The translations under genes and the position numbers were made by a program. From Blastocystis sp. Blastoise (Eukaryota; Protista; Bigyra: Opalinata), in contig JBBPEB010000004.1 of NCBI GenBank assembly GCA_039096225.1, positions 124,001 to 188,000 of the forward strand: a DNA stretch of 64,000 nucleotides, in the 5' to 3' direction. Positions 15,754-33,302 of the stretch are shown here, one piece after another (position 1 is the first letter of the stretch; every line of letters begins with the position of its first letter). Below the pieces are notes generated by a model. It was not told the origin of the DNA. It did not search any database and saw only the letters and a list, made by a program, of their open reading frames with translations.

Positions 15754-15761
15754 ATTGGTTG
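15754..15761 (+). repeat. Left 8-bp target-site duplication ATTGGTTG
   Basis: Identical to 31975-31982 and directly abuts the CAGGG terminus. 8 bp is the TSD length of hAT elements. Confidence 0.88.
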
Positions 15762-15819
15762 CAGGGGTCACCACGTAGTTACTCGTTAAGCGAAAGGACC
15801 AAAATTTTTGCGCTTAAAT
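15762..15819 (+). repeat. Left terminal and subterminal inverted repeat of the hAT element
   Basis: CAGGGGTCACCA...TTAAGCGAAA...TTTTTGCGCTTAAAT. Confidence 0.82.
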
Positions 15820-15964
15820 AACAAAGTTACTTTTTTATTACCGTGATTTTCATAGTTATTTTAAGTGATGAAAACACGGGAAAAACAAAAATATAAGGGA
15901 AAATGTTTTGCTAAACCAAAAAGAACATTCTATATTAGATAAACTTTTTTTATTGTTTAAATAC

Positions 15965-18699
15965 ATGGAACAGTACTTTAAAAAATTACAAGTATATTAA
16001 TAGTAATATATATATATATATATAGATTGACAAGTCTACAACAGACGAAAAAAAAAAAGATGATGACATAATTACAGAAGAAACGAATAATAAACCAGAT
16101 ATTAATCCTAAATCCAAATATTATAGTGAAGTAAAAGAAGGAGTTAAAAGATATAATGCCAATCCAGTTGTTTATGGATTTAAAAAATTAACAAAAAACT
16201 CCTATTTTTGTTTAATCTGTGAGTCTACTCTCACGTGTAAAGGTTATGAAGCCTCAAAACTCTTCACTCATTTCAAGAATAAACATGGGTTAAGCAAATA
16301 TACATATGATGACATTCAAGAACTCTTAAAAGATCATAATGAAAACACAGAATACTCAAATTCTCTCTTTAGCTTTTCAGATTTATCCAGTAAGCTTTCA
16401 TATTTCATCGCCTACTCCATTTCAAAGAATGGATACAGCTACAGAACTGGAGAAAAATTAGTTAAACCTATTATTGAAGAATATGAAAGGTTAAAGAATG
16501 TCAAAGTCCTTTCTAATCTTCCGTTATCCTCAAGCAGTATCAAAAGAAAAAGTGATGAAATTGCTTTGACAATTCAACAAGAAGTAATAAATAGGATAAG
16601 ACAATCAGGATCATTTTCTATTCAGCTTGACGAGTCAACTGACATAGAAATGAAATCCTATTTACTCGTTTATGCTAGATACGAATATAATAAAAAGTTT
16701 ACTGAATCATTTTTAAGTATTTTTCAGATTAGTTCCAAAACAGGTGATAATATATTTAACATGGTAGATAATTTCTTTAATAATAATAACCTTCTGTGGA
16801 ATAATTGCGTATCAGCTACTTTTGACGGTGCTTCGAATATGAATGGAGACAAAAACTCCTTCAAAACACGAGTACTAGAGAAGAATAAGAATTGTATGTT
16901 CATCCACTGTTTTCTTCATAGAGAAGAACTCTGTGTAAACTGTTTACCAAAATACTTCACTAATATATTCAAAAGTGCTGTTGAGATAATTTCATATATA
17001 AAGAAGTCTGCTGTTAGACAAGACGAATCCAATAATTACAATATTGATAATGAATATTCATTAACCTCTTCTATCTTCTCTCCTCAAGATAACATACCTG
17101 ATTCCCCTAATAATATATCTTCTTTAGAGATAGAATATAATAAAGTAGTTGAATCCCTTTTAGATACATCTGATACAGATAATAATATAGATAATAATAT
17201 TCATGAAGTTTATAGTAATGATAAGAAGGAAGAAAAAAAGGAAAAAAATATTAGAAGTTATAAACTTCTCCTTTATTGCCCTACAAGATGGCTTTCATGC
17301 CATTCATCAATTAAAAGATTTAATTTACTTAGAAATGGAATAACACTAGTAATAAAAAAGGATAAAGAAAGGAAGGACTTATATAACACCATTATTGATA
17401 CTAACTTCATAGCTTCAATGTTATACCTTGAGGATGTTACCAGTTTATTCTATGATTGTAATAAATCAATGCAAGGACAGCATAGATATATATTTGGGTT
17501 AATAGACATTATGAAGGATTTATTTATAAAATTATCGTTGAGATTAGAAAGACTAATAAATAATAACGATTATTCATCATTTACGAAACTTAAGGATTAT
17601 GTATCTACAACCAAGCTTGATATTAATTCAATCATATTTTATATCAAAAATCATCTAATAACTCTTCGACGTAATTTACTGAATTATTTCCCAGAAATAC
17701 TAAATTATATTGGTAGTGATGAATCGTATCTTCAAGACCTTAATGAATATTTAATAGACCAAGAAAATACACATAATACATCAAATATATCTCATGAAGT
17801 GAATAGTAATGTTAATAACAATACATCAGTAGTATCAAACCAATTTAATATTCTTGGATCATTACAAGGTTGCGTATCTCCAAATGGAGTTGTAAATGGC
17901 TTAATAACCTATGTTGACATAGTTACTCAGCAATTAATAGAAACTCAAGTAACGATTAGAATTGACTTTCCATATTTAGTATATGGATACACTTTAGGTA
18001 GTATTTCTGGTGTTCTTAATAATTTCCCTAATAGTAGTATTCAAGGACAATACAATGGAATCATTAGTAATATAAATATAATTCAGGCTAATATCAATTG
18101 TATAATAACTCTTGGGGCAATCATTCCAAATGAAATAAGTAATAATACAAATCAAGGAGAAGTACAAAAGAATAAAAAGCAGAAGAAAACGAATAGTAAC
18201 ATAAAAAAACCAAAAAATACACCAACAACTAATCTTATTGATCATTCTTTATATTGGATTACTAATCCATTTTCAAAAGTAGCTGACGAAAATAAAATGG
18301 AGTTTCATGTTAAAGAAGAGTATTTCTGTTTACTTGCTGATAAAACATGTAGAGAAGAATTTAATAACGTACCAATAGATGAGTTCTATATAAGCCATAA
18401 GAGTCGTTTTCCATTATTATATGATATAGCCAAGAAATGTTTTCTTCCCTTTGCAACTTCATATCTCTGTGAGAGCGGTTTCAGTCATCTCGTGTATATA
18501 AAAAACAAATACAGAAACACTATTAATCCAACAACCCAAATGACAATTGGATTAACTTCTGATATCATTGATTCTTCATCACTTATAACTACTGTTTTAG
18601 AGCGTATGTATATTATAAGTATTATATTCATAATTCACATAATATAGAATCTATTCTTAATTATATATAGATAAATTAAAGAAAAAGAAACTCGATTGA
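15965..18699 (+). CDS. hAT transposase, Buster/Charlie (ZBED5/ZBED8/SCAND3-like) type, about 877 aa; exons 15965-15991, 16026-18603, 18671-18699
   Basis: Frame is open from 16026. BED-type finger CLIC...KLFTHFKNKH, then GEKLVKP and LPLS. Catalytic SIQLDESTD, TFDGASNM and ATSYLCESGFS, plus HCFLHRE (CxxH) and TRWLS. C-terminal dimerisation region KNKYRN. Confidence 0.93.
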
Positions 18700-19299
18700 T
18701 AACATCTAGCAACAAAATCACTAATCTAATCCAACTACTTAATTACTGTATTTATACTACAAAGTACATTGATTTCTTTTACTATTAATATTTATATATT
18801 TATATTGTTTTCATTATATTAACTATTTGTATTCCATAATGTTTTATTGTTACATTATAATTTGTATTGTTTTAATTAACTCAAGAAGATATACTGTTAT
18901 CTTTTAAATATAATTATAAATAGATGACATTGAATATTCCTTTATATATTTGATTATATCAATAGTATATAGTTTCTTAATTAGAATCACTATTCCTTAA
19001 TAATTTTTATCTATATTTCAATTATTTTTCTAATTATATTCTTTTTCAAGTACTATTATATTCAGATCAAACGAATAACTGAGAAATATTATTACTTATA
19101 TGAAAAATAAATATTATTTTAGAAGTAATTATTTCATATATACTAATCTCTCTAGTATAATACTTTAAAACAATATCCAATACTAATAAGAATCTTTATT
19201 CAATCAAAAGTATAATATACAACTATAAAGTATACTCTTCTTAAATCAAATAGTATATCTAATCAAGAAGATTAAATATATAAATAAATAGCAAAATAT

Positions 19300-22200
19300 A
19301 TTTTCAATCATAATGTATCAATAGAAAGAACCAAATAACTACTAAAATCATTTACCTGACTTATCAATCAAATATCACAAAGAGAGTGATAACAATTGGT
19401 TCCTAAAGAATATACTATTTTCCAAAACATATATATAAAGTGGAATCTTAAATCGTTTACACCAACAATTTTATATTTATACATGAATTCAAAAGGAAAG
19501 AGCAAGATGTGTTATATCTATATTAAGTATCATATGAGGGATTATATATATCCGAAAGAGTATTAGAATATATGATATAATAGAAAGTAATGTGGATTTT
19601 ATATTATAATAGCATGAAATAAGTATTAGATTAAGATTCATGATATTATATAAAGGTTAGCATTTGAAAGATTATCAGAAGAAAAATTATTGGAAAGATT
19701 GACATAGACTTAATGAGAATATATTTATATATGTAGATCATAAAGAAGATAACTAAAAACTTGTAAATAAAATTTGAAGTTAAGAAGAAGGAAGAATGCA
19801 TATATCAACTGAATTTATAATCGGCAGTGATAAATGAGTAGAAGAGACGATAATAATTATTTTTAGTATATTTTTAAAGACAATAACATGAAGAGAGAAC
19901 AATATTCGTATAAAAATATATATAAATCTATAAATAGAAATACAATAAATAAACCATAAGAAGTAATAAGAAGTTGATTTCTATATTATATCATCATGAG
20001 TAAAAGAACAAACGGAGTAAATTGTATATAATAGTTAGACATTGTATAAATAATATGAAGTAACGGCTGATAACGGAAAAAGCAGGTGTAAATATATATA
20101 AGCATATTAATTATGTACATATGCACTTAAGAAGATATAATATCTAAAGTAATAGAAATGAAAATAAATTTAGAAAATAAACAATTCGAGAACTACCTCA
20201 ACCGTATTCAACAAAATAGAAGAAATACAAATAGTATTATAGTATTCATATCAGCATGAATGTAAGATGTATATAGATAATAAGTTAAAGGGAGTTGAAA
20301 TGGTTTAAAGTAAATAGAGATAGTATTTTATTAAATAACAGTACGAAAGAAATATGGAGACATAGATCCTATTATATAATTATATCATTTTTGGAAAATG
20401 AGAGTAATTAGAAATGAGAAAGAATAGAAGGAATAGAAGGTGTAGATACTAGGCTTTTATAAAAAATTAAATAAGAAGAAGAGAATGTACACAATAATAA
20501 TAAATAAGAGTAGCCATATAAATATGTTTAAGTAACAAAAAGAGCAAAACCTTAGAATGAAGAGAAATAATAAAAATATCTTTTGTGGTATATAGATAAT
20601 AGTAATACAACAATGAGAACAAATCCTAACTTTGATTACTAAAATCCATGATGAGTAGTGCCAAGAGAGAAATTGTTGGAAAGAAAAAGAAAGGAAACGA
20701 ACGAGAAGAATTATAAAAAACGATAGTAAGAAATAGGACTAATAAAAATATTCAAACCCATATTATTTAGACAAGAAATGGAAAATGCTTCTGAAATAAT
20801 AACTGTGTAAATAGGAAATACAATAAACATGAGCATTAAAGAATATGAAGAGAGATAATGATGAAGCAGTATTAAAATGAATAAGTCTAATAATGAGCAC
20901 ACAATATACACAATAGAAGCACTAGAAATAAAAGAAAAGTGGATAAAGAAATAGAGATAATGAGGAAGTATAGGATTAAAAATAGGCACAAAAATAAGTA
21001 GACCATGGGATAATATATAGAACATGAGAAAACGAAGAAAACCATAAATGAAGGATATGAATATGTATATGAAGAGTATATTTGAATGAAATATGAAAAT
21101 AAATTAATTGAGTATGTTTTCAATTATAGAAACAAATATAAAAATAAATCTGTTAGAATAATAAAACTAAGATATATAATAATATATAATAGTGAGGAAT
21201 TTGTAATTATTAAAGGAAAAGAAAATCGTCATTAAATCTCATAGTATGTTTAATAGAGAAATATGAAACGACTATTAGAATAACATAAGAACATAAAGAA
21301 TTCTATCATAGGAGAAAAAGGAATATCAACTAAGGATAATATAAAAGTAATATAAAAATAGCACATCTAGAAACTCTTTAATAAAGGGAAAAGAACATGC
21401 AGGTGAAGTATTACGAATGATCACATAATAATTGAAAAGCACCAGAAGAAATGAAGAGTCTAATAAATATAAAGATACCATACGAAGAAGATAGGAAGAG
21501 ACTGAAAAACCAGAAAACTAATACAATTAATGTAATGCTATAATACCTTAAAAGAACAAAAGATGAAATAAGATAAGGAAATAAGATAAGGTTTATAACT
21601 AAAAATTCAATATATAATAGTAGACTAACGATAACATGAAGAGAAGTTGAAGAATAATTAACCAAGATGAAAATATATACAAAGAATAAAAAGAAATTCA
21701 AAAATTTTATACAGAAAACTACAACAAAGAAATATCATATAGATACTTTCCTGTATAATAGCATATTAAAGAATTACACAATAAGATACTAAAACATTCA
21801 AAAACTTATAATAGTAAACTTGATAGAATAAGAGTACATGATAATATTGTAATATAGACAAAAGGATTTAAGGATGAAAAGAAATAAACATCAATTGTTA
21901 CTAATCTGCTACTATCTTCAGTAGAAACTTATGTATGTTAGTAACCATAGTAAGTATTAATCGCAGAGATGAAGTGTTTAAGTATTTATTAAATACTAGA
22001 ATAAGAATAAGAAAATTCATAATAAGTAAATCTATAAGAAAATGTCATCGTTATATATAAATACCATTATAATACAGTATGAAAAAAGGAAGTATCAGAA
22101 AAATAAAAAACAAAAACAAAATAATTAGCACTTATAAAGTAGAACAAGCAATCAAAAGCACATTAGTCGAATAAAATCAAACATACAAACAACATAAATA

Positions 22201-22600
22201 AAGATCTCATTAATCGCAAAGTTACAAAAAAAAAAATGAGTATACTAATTCAAGAAGAGAAGTAAGGAAGTTTGGTGAGTAACCAAATCAGATGTAAATA
22301 ATAAATGGAAGGCAACAAACTGTAAATATTCATAAAATTATACATTGCAAGTAATCATTCCAAGAATAAGTAACTGATAAGTATCCATCACGTAGCACAT
22401 TGTAAGATATGTGTATTGAACACTGATCATAACGAGCAAGTACGTAACAAAGCAATCAACAAACAATGGGAAATCATCATGTAGTAGATATTGACTAGTA
22501 TTTAAGAGGAGTTCACAATGCAACAAAAACCAATATGAATCTTAATGATAAACCATTATTAGTTCAGAAAGCAGATAGAAAGCAAGTTTGAAAAAATATT
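19300..22600 (-). pseudogene. Possible heavily decayed cargo gene remnant(s) inside the hAT element
   Basis: Purine-rich plus strand, as seen opposite host coding strands. Broken minus-strand frames such as LSLRFILVFVAL...VLARYDQCSIHISYNVLRDGYLSVTYSWNDYLQ, followed by an intron-like GTATAA...TTTACAG near 22320-22343. No long ORF. Confidence 0.3.
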
Positions 22601-22983
22601 ATAGGCAATAATCTTATTCTGATTTGAATCTTTAACAAAAGAATGAAATTATCATTGAAATTTTTAAAGAATGACTGAAGTTTTAAAAATAATCAAATAG
22701 TCAGTCCTTTCCTGACTTTGGTGACACTTGCCACCAAATTTTGTGACACTTTTTCAGCCATGCTTAATTCTGCTGAATTTATCAAACACATAAGGAAGTT
22801 TTTTGTAACAAAATATGATACTCATGAGTTTTGTCATCAGACTGAATGAAAGGCTTTTCACCTTATTTGTATACATGGCCATAAATCATAATATTTTTGA
22901 CAAAGTTAACCTAAATACAAAAAATGTCTTTATAAATGAGCAAATAAAGCTATCATTTATTTGATATAAGCCATCAAACATAT

Positions 22984-30084
<7,101 letters not shown>

Positions 30085-30267
30085 AAAGAAAGAAAGTAAT
30101 TAAGTAAAGCAGATTATAAAAATTAAAATAAATACTCAAGGCGAATACTCTTGATAAACTAAGTTAATTAAATTAAACCAAAATAAATGATCGTATCAAG
30201 AGATAATCAAAATAAATATATAAAAGAACAAGTTTCATAAAAAGATGTTTTTCCAAGAAATAAAAAT

Positions 30268-30345
30268 AAAAATGCCTCTTGCGAGATTCGATCCAGCGAC
30301 AATTACCATAATAGCTACAGCGCTGGTCAACTATACCAACCGATT
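30268..30345 (-). ncRNA. tRNA-sized Pol III-like unit, copy 1 (A box + B box + T5); not a foldable tRNA
   Basis: On the minus strand: A-box-like TGGTATAGTTGA (30338-30327), B-box-like GGATCGAATCT (30294-30284) starting 44 nt later, and TTTTT (30272-30268). Confidence 0.5.
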
Positions 30346-30629
30346 TCTCAATTTTATTTTTTCATGTGTTCTATATAATAAGTTTAAAATTATTTGATAT
30401 CTTCAAATATTATATTTATGCTCTTTTATTACATTTATAACATTCTAGAAATACTTAGAATTGTTTTTAAACAATAATTACTATTTTTTGAAAAAAAAGT
30501 TTGTTGATATGTTGATTCTAAACTAAAAAGCAGATATCAATGATGTAAATAATGTTTACAGATAATAAAAATGAAACAAAGTTGATTTTAAATAAAATCA
30601 TTGTAAATAGCAGTCAAAAGAAAAAGTTT

Positions 30630-30708
30630 AAAAAAATAGTTCCTCGTAAGATTCGATCCGTCCACTATGTAAAAATTTTATACGCACTGACCATTTGACC
30701 AAACAACT
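30630..30708 (-). ncRNA. tRNA-sized Pol III-like unit, copy 2 (A box + B box + T7); not a foldable tRNA
   Basis: On the minus strand: A box TGGTCAAATGG (30701-30691), identical B-box-like GGATCGAATCT (30659-30649) starting 42 nt later, and T7 (30636-30630). Confidence 0.52.
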
Positions 30709-31189
30709 CCCTTATAATATTTTTCATCAAGTCATATAATAATTGCAAAGCTAGTGACTACTAACCGTTTTTTTATTTTTTTATTTTTAAACATAAAAAC
30801 AATATATTTTATAATATAAATATTATAAATGTGTTGTGTGACTTATTCTACATATAAAATACATTTTAAAACCATTTTATAAGGCTATTAAAAATCATTT
30901 TGTTGGACGTATTGTTTTTTCAAATCCAGCTTTTGTTCATTGTATTGTTTTTTGTTTGATTTTTGAAAAATAATATTTTAATATGCTTTTCGTTTATTTA
31001 ATTTTTATTACTTGTCAGGATGTATCTGTACAGTCCCTACAAGACTACTTCATGATATTTTATAAAAATAAAAACTTTTTAATTACATTATTATTTTTTA
31101 TAATATTTTTTAGTATTTATTGACATTATTTTTCATTATAAACATAAATAAAAGTCTTTAAAATAATATACAAAAGAATATCTTAAGCA

Positions 31190-31520
31190 ATTGACTTTTG
31201 TCACAAAATAATTTTTATTTGTCACCCAAATTAACACAAATAGTCAAATATAGGAATCATACTTGTTGTTATTTGATGACTTATGAACTTTTAAGTCATG
31301 TATCTGTCACAACATGTGTCACAAAAATCTTCTTAGATGACTTATTTCAAAACATTTATACATTATATATCAAAATAATATGTTTTAAGTTAAAAACTGT
31401 CATGTCATAGTATAATAGTCAATGAATGAATTACTTTTTTATGTCACCCGGTCTTTTTTTCATGAAAAGTGTGTAAATTAATGCGTCTTGATGAGCTGAG
31501 TTTGAAAATTTTTTGACCAC
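31190..31520. promoter_or_regulatory. Dense cluster of TGAC/GTCA(C/T) motifs inside the right arm of the element
   Basis: About 14 TGAC/GTCA cores in roughly 330 bp. Similar clusters precede host genes, e.g. 44840-45230. Confidence 0.4.
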
Positions 31521-31908
31521 TAATAATCAGTATTTAGCCAATTTAAAAGAATTCAAAGTTTTGTAAAAATTTGAAGCATGTATTGCTATTATGATTCTAC
31601 TACTACTATATTATTAAGATCTACACATAATCACGCTTTTTTCCTAATTGTTAAATACTTAAAGACAATCAATCATTATAACTACATGATTAACATTCTA
31701 AAAATGCTAAAAAATTCAATTTGCTCTCTAATTATAATATGTGTAAGGTTATTATTTATTCAACAACAAATCAAATTACATCAACAAACACAAACCTCGT
31801 GTAAAATGTCAAAAACATCATTATTGAGCTTATCTCGATCCTCTAAAAATTATTAAACGTTTTATTCTATGTAGATTTATAAAAATTAAAAGAAAAATGA
31901 AATAAAAG

Positions 31909-31974
31909 ATTTAAGCGCAAAAACAACATCGAAAAGCGCACTTTGCGCTTAAAGCGCAGTTTTGGCACACCCTG
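31909..31974 (-). repeat. Right terminal and subterminal inverted repeat of the hAT element, with four AAGCGCA/TGCGCTT units
   Basis: ATTTAAGCGCAAAAA...AAAGCGCACTTTGCGCTTAAAGCGCA...TGGCACACCCTG. Confidence 0.85.
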
Positions 31975-31982
31975 ATTGGTTG
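31975..31982 (+). repeat. Right 8-bp target-site duplication ATTGGTTG
   Basis: Directly follows CCCTG and is identical to 15754-15761. Confidence 0.88.
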
Positions 31983-32105: not shown

Positions 32106-33302
32106 ATGCGTATAGTACTTGTTATTGATCAATGGGATAATGTGAGACATGGAGTTACAGTTGCTGCTAGAAGAACTGTAGAGATCTTAAGAAAACATGG
32201 TCACTATGTAAGAGTCGTTGCTACTGGTCTTCCTGAACAAGATAAATATGTAGTTCCTGAAATTGATGATATCGTTCAAAAAGCTTCAAGTCAACATGCT
32301 TTAAAGTATGGTTATCCTGATGAAGCTGTTCTTCGTGAAGCTTTTGTAGGAGCTGATTTAGTTCATTTTATGATTCCTTATAAGCTTTGTGCTAAAGGTG
32401 CTGATATTGCTTTAGAAATGCATATTCCTATAACTGGTGCTTTCCATGTTCAACCTGAAAATATTACTCATCATTTAAACTTGTATATGTTCCCTTTTGT
32501 TGCGGAGTGTATTTTTGAAGGATTTAAATATTGTTATTACAATAAATTCGAGTTCATTCATTGTCCTACTGAATTTATTGCTAATGAGCTTAGACGTCAC
32601 AACTATGATGCCAGACTTTATGTTATTTCTAATGGTGTTCATGAATGTTTCAAACCTCATCCTGAAATAAAGAAGCCTGCTGAATGGGCTGATAAGTTTG
32701 TCGTTACTATGGTTGGTCGTTATGCTCATGAAAAGAGACAAGATGTCTTGATAAAGGCTATTAAAGGTTCTCCTATCGAAGATAAGATTCAATTAGTATT
32801 TGCTGGAACTGGTCCTTTAGAAGAACATTATAAGAAACTTGCTCATGGTTTAAAGAATCCTGCTCATTTCAGTTGGTATGATAGAGATGGATTAGTTACT
32901 TTATTAAATCAATCTGATTTATATATTCATTGTGCTGATGCTGAAATTGAAGCTATTTCTGCTATTGAAGCTATTTCTTGTGGAGTTGTTCCTGTTATTG
33001 CTGTTAGTAAAAAATCTGCTACTCGTCAATTTGCTCTTGATCAAAGAAGTTTATTTGAACATGCTCAACCTCATCAATTATTAGAAAAAATTACTTATTG
33101 GATTGAACATCCTGAAGAACTTCATGCAATGAAGAGTGAATATACTAAAGAAGCTGAACAATATCAACTTGAATCATGTGTTTACAAATTAGAAGGTATG
33201 TTTATGGATTCTATAAAGTATTATAATGAAACTGTATGGTGTCCTAAACCTGTTATTACTGAAACATCTGGTATTAATGTTACTGGTAGATATACTGCTT
33301 AA
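32106..33302 (+). CDS. cgt: Intronless GT4 (GT-B fold) glycosyltransferase, cholesterol alpha-glucosyltransferase-like (Helicobacter HP0421 type), 398 aa
   Basis: Motifs that I recall from H. pylori CGT: GAFHVQPENI, IHCPTEFIANEL, ISNG, MVGRYAHEKRQDVLIKA, EAISCGVVPVIA, SATRQFALDQRSLFE. No introns, unlike its neighbours. Confidence 0.88.
   Translation: MRIVLVIDQWDNVRHGVTVAARRTVEILRKHGHYVRVVATGLPEQDKYVVPEIDDIVQKASSQHALKYGYPDEAVLREAFVGADLVHFMIPYKLCAKGADIALEMHIPITGAFHVQPENITHHLNLYMFPFVAECIFEGFKYCYYNKFEFIHCPTEFIANELRRHNYDARLYVISNGVHECFKPHPEIKKPAEWADKFVVTMVGRYAHEKRQDVLIKAIKGSPIEDKIQLVFAGTGPLEEHYKKLAHGLKNPAHFSWYDRDGLVTLLNQSDLYIHCADAEIEAISAIEAISCGVVPVIAVSKKSATRQFALDQRSLFEHAQPHQLLEKITYWIEHPEELHAMKSEYTKEAEQYQLESCVYKLEGMFMDSIKYYNETVWCPKPVITETSGINVTGRYTA

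Follow-up and report, generated by a model that had tools for sequence, protein, structure and literature searches.

A composite, autonomous-type hAT transposon of 16.2 kb with a nested hAT-like element, at about 18 near-identical copies in Blastocystis sp. 'Blastoise'

A giant element of the hAT superfamily spans positions 15762-31974 (16.2 kb) of the 64-kb stretch of Blastocystis sp. 'Blastoise' DNA analysed here, from an organism of the tortoise gut. This stretch (hereafter the window) is G000:C13:124001-188000 within an assembly of 33.3 Mb in 34 contigs, whose labels are the C-numbers used below. The element is most probably one copy of a composite, autonomous-type DNA transposon. Its own parts are imperfect short terminal inverted repeats (TIRs; CAGGG...CCCTG), AAGCGC motifs, a three-exon transposase gene and at least 2.8 kb of intrinsic DNA. 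We hypothesize that the interior earlier took in an 8.8-kb element from a second hAT-like family, one of Pack type, and that this element lost its own right end; the route could have been either nested insertion followed by deletion or gap repair with template switching, and the inner element would already have held a 5′ fragment of the host gene UTP20 and other repeats on entry. Since only the outer ends are intact, the transposase would now cut and paste the whole 16.2 kb, making 8-bp target site duplications (TSDs); a very recent burst would have produced about 18 full copies and one truncated copy. We infer how the copy number rose, and that the element's own protein was the driver of the burst. 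By analogy with Hermes and Ac, excision would leave a hairpin on the flanking DNA and integration would use an 8-bp staggered cut of the target.

Termini, target duplications and copies

The element is flanked by the 8-mer ATTGGTTG at 15754-15761 and again at 31975-31982, directly outside the right terminus; the 8-mers of other copies differ from it. Its TIRs (CAGGGGTC... from 15762 and ...CACCCTG to 31974) share five perfect bases, followed by a partial match. The left terminus (CAGGGGTCACC..., 15762-15819, plus strand) holds one AAGCGC-type subterminal motif and one arm of a 15-bp subterminal inverted repeat, and the element's own right end (31515-31974, plus strand) holds four such motifs (31913-31957), the other arm and the terminus ...GGCACACCCTG. 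That repeat, TTTTTGCGCTTAAAT, lies at 15805-15819 on the plus strand and at 31909-31923 on the minus strand, and these are its only matches in the window with up to two mismatches allowed (0.35 expected by chance). The TSD, the CAGGG/CCCTG ends and the 15-bp repeat had been named in an initial annotation of this DNA, made from its letters alone, and all were read where that annotation had put them. Five of the eight AAGCGC hexamers in the window lie at most 62 bp from the termini of the element; they resemble the subterminal binding repeats of hAT elements and may likewise bind transposase. Short TIRs of the (C/T)AG type together with subterminal short repeats, as expected of a hAT element, are therefore present.

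A genome search found the left end (first 200 bp) at 19 loci and the right end (last 200 bp) at 18, all 100% identical. They form 18 paired copies on 12 contigs, 16 of about 16.1-16.2 kb, one of 18.4 kb (C31) and one of 22.7 kb (C16), leaving one unpaired left end at C22:56001. When the flanks were read, a perfect 8-bp TSD was present at 16 of the 18 pairs, each different from all others, and such 8-bp duplications are what hAT elements make. Every internal segment searched has the same copy number as the ends. The whole 16.2 kb moves as one unit, as the initial annotation had proposed when it called for a search with both ends. A shorter element ending near 19 kb, which it had named as the finding that would speak against its reading, was looked for and not found: neither terminal sequence occurs a second time within the window, no transposase copy has a closer right end, and self-comparison of the window gave no further internal inverted repeat able to delimit a shorter element.

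The 16 perfect TSDs fit the pattern nTnnnnAn: 11 of them have T as the second base, and 12 have A as the seventh (P about 0.003 for the A). Arensburger and colleagues are said to have distinguished, in 2011, an Ac-type target nTnnnnAn from a Buster-type target nnnTAnnn. TA at positions 4-5 occurs in only two of the 16, although the nearest named homologues of the transposase are ZBED5/EPM2AIP1-like.

The copies are very young. Over 1.7 kb from each end (19 and 18 copies, about 63 kb aligned), we counted seven singleton substitutions and one T/C site split 10:9, which marks two sub-lineages of the giant family; a 3.6-kb internal piece has few variable columns, mostly microsatellites. Divergence between copies is about 0.01-0.05%. 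The full transposase frame (871-888 aa, amino acids) is kept in 15 of 19 copies, and two others carry N-terminal indels that leave frames of 787-788 aa. The remaining two, on C26 and C31, have in common one additional A at window-equivalent 17241, each at its own locus with its own TSD; if this frameshift is real and not a homopolymer error, a defective copy has moved again through protein supplied in trans.

The copies amount to roughly 290 kb, about 0.9% of the 33-Mb genome, and reconstruction of the empty sites places three of the 18 insertions within long open frames (163-283 aa). Some copies have themselves been hit. The 22.7-kb copy (C16:1139961-1162669) carries a 6.5-kb insertion at window-equivalent 20165, and the truncated copy at C22:56001-67024 has the same insertion point; therefore, the truncated copy was made after that insertion. 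The 18.4-kb copy on C31 carries a different insertion, at window-equivalent 19017.

The right end of the giant element also has smaller relatives. Its last 96 bp match at least 11 loci at 85-86%, among them a 333-bp miniature element (CAGGGGTCATCAGG...GGCACACCCTG), of which the two copies read (L038:1266-1598 and, on the reverse strand, L039) are identical. Its first nine bases match the left end of the giant element. One of them is flanked by a perfect 8-bp TSD, TTCCTTTT; at the junction of the other, a single additional G is present. The 333-bp element is apparently a miniature derivative, one that this transposase or a close relative of it could mobilise.

Transposase gene and a public sequencing run

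The hAT transposase gene lies at 15965-18699 on the plus strand. Its first exon runs from an ATG at 15965 to a donor at 15973 or 15992, and the intron after it ends at 16025; the main exon (16026-18618) is followed by a 52-nt intron (18619-18670) and a last exon (18671-18699), taken from the deposited model and read in the DNA. An open frame of 873 codons, stop to stop, covers 16026-18647, for which a mechanical search for open reading frames (ORFs) gives TTG 16566 as the start; since no ATG, GTG or TTG stands in frame before that codon, a short 5′ exon starting at ATG 15965 is needed. The deposited NCBI model (P0001, 876 aa) matches 98% of the frame with 100% identity. We read the three-exon gene as encoding a transposase of some 876-882 aa, whose N-terminus carries a zinc finger.

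Just inside the main exon, a homopolymer at 16048-16058 varies from A10 to A13 among copies, with A11 in 11, including the window copy, and A12 in four. This variation could be real slippage or long-read assembly error, as homopolymer lengths in the assembly may include error; the run might switch individual copies on and off. A full protein from the window copy is predicted from its sequence. The view of the initial annotation that the element brings its own transposase is borne out, with the gene largely intact.

The protein bears the marks of a hAT transposase. Pfam reports the C-terminal hAT dimerisation domain PF05699 at residues 780-837 with 22.0 bits against a cut-off of 21.4, together with a weak match to DUF4371. 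Homologues at 25-30% identity are named ZBED5/7/8/9 or EPM2AIP1, and a paralogue in the same genome, P0002, is 34% identical. In an alignment of seven homologues, D202/E203/T205/D206, D267-G268-A269, C295xxH298, R421-W422 and C815 are invariant, and E816 of the LCExxFS motif is kept in six, so that the DDE triad and the CxxH and RW motifs are all found. We presume that the D, D, E and W residues correspond to D180, D248, E572 and W319 of Hermes. The AlphaFold2 model has a mean predicted local distance difference test (pLDDT) score of 59.8, with a core above 80, and Hermes transposase accounts for each of the ten best Foldseek hits in the PDB (E 1.4e-8 to 4e-6; target template modelling score 0.38-0.52). 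The predicted model has a Hermes-type RNase-H-like fold with an inserted all-alpha domain. Together with the TSDs, these features bear out the earlier assignment of the element to the hAT group. Two long low-complexity insertions, both with pLDDT below 50, occupy residues about 340-410 and 575-736; they are absent from ZBED5-like homologues, and the 34% Blastocystis paralogue carries such insertions at the same positions.

One public sequencing run of unrecorded type (X1) contained 64% of the sequence words sampled. In it, a single 3083-bp contig covers exactly 15762-18844 at depth 226; the cargo appears in short pieces at depth 4-9, and the host flank has depth 0. The transposase region thus stands 25-50-fold over the cargo; since every part of the element is equally numerous in the DNA, this excess points to RNA. 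The evidence for transcription is suggestive only, given an unspliced contig and a run whose type is a guess. A junction contig of the same run leads into the flank of a different copy, whose insertion site falls within an open frame of 212 aa. The high-depth contig differs from the window copy at 16301, the T/C site that splits the family 10:9, and at 17371, which fits an R-to-K difference from the deposited model; thus, the window copy is unlike the dominant form at both positions. Two further runs (X2 and X3) contained none of the window sequence, a result that carries no evidential weight.

Interior of the element

About 13.3 kb of DNA follows the transposase gene inside the giant element. 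The initial annotation had taken some 13 kb of it to be host cargo; that stands for the UTP20 fragment, but about 2.8 kb is intrinsic to the family and 8.8 kb is a truncated second hAT-like element. The intrinsic part (18700-21447, plus strand) is purine-rich and non-coding, has no credible open frames and is present in all copies. A counterpart of window 18651-21447, about 71% identical, immediately follows a degenerate relative of the transposase (C15:593870-597974; 66-70% aa identity, many stops); therefore, this DNA is ancestral to the family and not recent cargo. The next segment (21448-22701, plus strand), likewise without open frames and present in all copies, is matched by element copies only.

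The remaining block (22702-31514, plus strand) is a nested, truncated copy of the second family, 8.8 kb long, which begins at that family's true left terminus (CAGTCC...) and includes its right-hand part at 30261-31514 (plus strand; about 11 loci match at 84-87%). Window 22685-22779 has counterparts at seven dispersed loci and 30261-31514 at eleven; at no fewer than five other loci, both ends of the block occur together in the same orientation, 8.2-8.4 kb apart (C17:776.1-784.4k, C13:1008.3-1016.5k, C13:1163-1171k, C20:1051.5-1059.9k and C23:344.9-353.2k). The end pieces of these five relatives were read, and all begin CAGTGCCTTCC... and end ...GGAAGTCGCTG (CAGTGCC...GTCGCTG). A full 8-bp TSD is present at one, and at the other four the flanks agree over the 2-6 bases fetched. 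We conclude that these 8.2-8.4-kb elements form a second hAT-like family; no transposase-like sequence matching that of the giant element was found at the five loci. The relatives continue about 150 bp past the point of divergence near 31510; therefore, the block in the window, which stops at 31514, is truncated at its right end and immobile by itself.

Two other interpretations of this block were tried and rejected. The direct repeat AATAATCA (22688-22695 and 31522-31529) is not its TSD, given that the true left terminus, at 22702, lies 6 nt away and that the second family's true right terminus is absent from the window. A Helitron, which would have 5′-TC and 3′-CTRR ends, a 3′ hairpin, an insertion site between A and T and no TSD, does not fit relatives that end in CAGTGCC...GTCGCTG, one of them with a full 8-bp TSD. 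Within the block, two remnants resembling transfer RNA (tRNA) genes lie on the minus strand at 30270-30345 and 30640-30700, each recognised by T-arm-like (GATTCGATCC) and D-arm-like pieces; ARAGORN and Rfam scans of the giant element called nothing, these remnants included.

The nested block carries a 5′ fragment of host UTP20 (23139-25993, minus strand), captured at the DNA level and now frameshifted in every giant copy. Positions 3-121 and 130-276 of the Pfam domain UTP20_N lie in separate frames of the fragment, and the intact host gene (C34:675944-678284) holds positions 3-363 in one frame of 646 aa, which is broken in the element. DNA alignment of fragment and host gene gives 94 mismatches and 28 gap openings over 2993 columns, a divergence of about 2.5-3%; the giant copies are all identical in the 206-aa frame that was searched. 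Compared with the 0.01-0.05% that separates the copies, this divergence places the capture long before the burst and makes it at least fifty-fold older, in agreement with the earlier view that decayed cargo is far older than a recent jump. Pfam searches of nine further cargo frames gave no match beyond UTP20_N. Since the fragment is carried by the nested element, its capture by the giant element is second-hand.

Next to the fragment lies a dispersed repeat block of 2.8 kb (25994-28785); beyond the giant family, the genome has about nine more copies of it, 80-93% identical. The block is missing from the host UTP20 locus, where only 138 bp stand in its place. Sequence resembling the region upstream of host UTP20 follows (28786-29634; 88% identical to C34:679570-680433), and it also adjoins other copies of the 2.8-kb block. 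A module corresponding to 24230-31514 is colinear at C28:236-244k and C15:700-708k, at 88-95% identity, and has neither the giant ends nor the transposase. Over a shared 991 bp, the giant copy, the C28 and C15 modules and the host gene are roughly equidistant (1.5-2.6%), a spacing that favours no particular order of transfers.

UTP20-like fragments of a separate, older set are also scattered in the genome. At least eight of them (L060-L069), with stops, are nearly identical to one another and about 18% away from both the host gene and the element copy, for example at C14:18.4k, C17:13.5k, C13:1322k and 1346k, C26:1282k and 1302k, C25:1033k and C31:1363k. For four or more of these, one each on C14 and C17 and two on C13, the nearest contig end is no more than about 40 kb away.

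Competing explanations, known systems and genomic setting

Several observations weigh against the picture of a composite, autonomous-type transposon. No copy of the giant element without the inner element was found in this genome. The 873-aa frame does not supply its own start codon, and the window copy, with its A11 run, is in frame only through the donor at 15992, when the deposited model implies the donor at 15973 and A12. The PF05699 score clears its cut-off by a thin margin, and PDB sequence searches with the transposase protein and profile gave no match. The high-depth contig of the run of unrecorded type retains both predicted introns. Two of the 18 pairs (L004/L024, C31:218.7-237.1k, and L012/L031, C16:443.7-459.9k) lack a clean TSD, one having a TSD offset by three extra bases (AGA) and the other unrelated flanking 8-mers, the latter of which suggests later rearrangement or recombination between copies. 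An origin of the 18 copies by segmental duplication or misassembly has their high identity in its favour and nothing more, and we regard it as having next to no probability: unrelated flanks on 12 contigs exclude both, each end of the similarity falls at one fixed base in all copies, and the perfect TSDs are of 16 different sequences.

It is also conceivable that a different hAT transposase mobilises the giant copies in trans and that the resident gene is a passenger that is still open. Other hAT loci in the genome have open frames of 632-773 aa (C2:16664, C23:490489, C33:278071, C23:217306 and C28:34433), P0002 is at hand, the start of the frame in the window copy is uncertain, and the frameshift at 17241 shared by two copies with their own TSDs would, if real, imply some supply in trans. 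However, 15 of 19 copies keep the full frame with intact catalytic motifs, sister copies of the same family are a simpler source of protein in trans, and the paralogues are only 34-41% identical. The transposases of hAT elements are usually specific for their own ends. We therefore hold this explanation to be quite improbable. Somewhat less improbable, and still unlikely, is direct capture of UTP20 by the giant element through Pack-type gap repair, with the other loci of the 7.3-kb module derived from it. Its fragment is the longest, reaching down to 23139 when the C28 and C15 modules break off at about 24230, and the rough equidistance over 991 bp would allow it. Against this, the block starts exactly at the left terminus of the second family, its last 1.25 kb is that family's right-hand part, and the 2.8-kb repeat and its flanking pieces occur in many other, more diverged arrangements.

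Whether the family still moves is a separate matter. We put forward only tentatively, at somewhat under even chances, that it is transposing now, as a 16-kb autonomous hAT that cross-mobilises the 333-bp element and spreads second-hand host-gene fragments. A finished burst, in which the copies are intact through youth alone and the element is now silenced or immobile, seems less likely again, if well worth considering. It would suit the facts that no empty or polymorphic site was observed, no test having been aimed at one, that the sole evidence from reads is an unspliced contig in a run of unrecorded type and that, because of the 5′ homopolymer, most copies do not keep the reading frame of the deposited gene model. 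The near-zero divergence with at least two sub-lineages, the frameshift shared by two copies, which implies successive rounds of movement, and the abundance of the transposase region in the public run, about 25-50 times that of the cargo, speak against it.

Among known systems, ToxhAT of the fungi Bipolaris sorokiniana, Pyrenophora tritici-repentis and Parastagonospora nodorum (PMC6737239) resembles the giant element in being large (14.3 kb), composite, bounded by TIRs, hAT-associated and cargo-carrying, with a nested transposon. It differs in being essentially single-copy, with 74-bp TIRs and a functional virulence gene, and it is known for horizontal transfer (PMC6737239); the giant element has about 18 near-identical copies, clean 8-bp TSDs, very short TIRs and broken gene pieces, and its host is a stramenopile protist of the gut. 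Pack-TYPE elements, including Pack-hAT of plants, move by cut and paste and amplify DNA-level fragments of host genes (PMC8903248), and the UTP20 fragment is such a piece of host gene between transposon ends. In fungi, hAT-mediated transduplication likewise carries host-gene fragments (PMC6710886, PMC3538342). Pack-TYPE elements are non-autonomous by definition and usually small, in contrast to a giant element with a transposase, whose host fragment sits inside a nested element. We have thus dropped the 'Pack-hAT' label of the initial annotation, as the term is strictly for non-autonomous elements: the open 873-aa transposase frame keeps the giant element out of that class, which its nested inner element resembles.

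Hermes, Ac and Tol2, the canonical autonomous hAT elements, also make 8-bp TSDs, and they share with the giant element CAG-type termini, short subterminal repeats and a DDE transposase that combines a Hermes-like fold with a C-terminal hAT dimerisation domain. Natural autonomous hAT elements are typically about 2.5-5 kb long, a size class that the 16.2-kb element exceeds. Tol2 moves engineered donors of 66-120 kb with 8-bp duplications (PMC2768751), so a 16-kb unit is within reach of hAT chemistry. The size and cargo of the giant element are not new in principle, in view of ToxhAT, Pack-type capture and the capacity of Tol2. New are the family itself, the organism and the clarity with which about 18 near-identical copies reveal an autonomous, composite unit. 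Tortoise isolates of Blastocystis have 21-23% GC, larger genomes and longer and more variable introns (PMC12129017); the genome paper treats transposable elements only in bulk, as 5.6-7.5% of the genome, with no mention of hAT, and our full-text search found no literature on hAT transposons in Blastocystis. The element shows a natural hAT able to carry and multiply a unit of three to four times the ordinary length, and it records growth through the uptake of a second transposon that itself carried gene sequence. Were the family still active, it would influence how the genomes of tortoise isolates differ, and its ends and transposase would be a candidate large-cargo vector for Blastocystis, an organism almost without genetic tools.

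In the window, the copy sits between a minus-strand gene that ends near 13.7 kb and an intronless GT4-type glycosyltransferase ORF (32106-33302; Pfam Glycos_transf_1, E 4e-25), which starts 124 bp downstream of the TSD. Read on the opposite strand, the duplicated ATTGGTTG includes a CCAAT motif.

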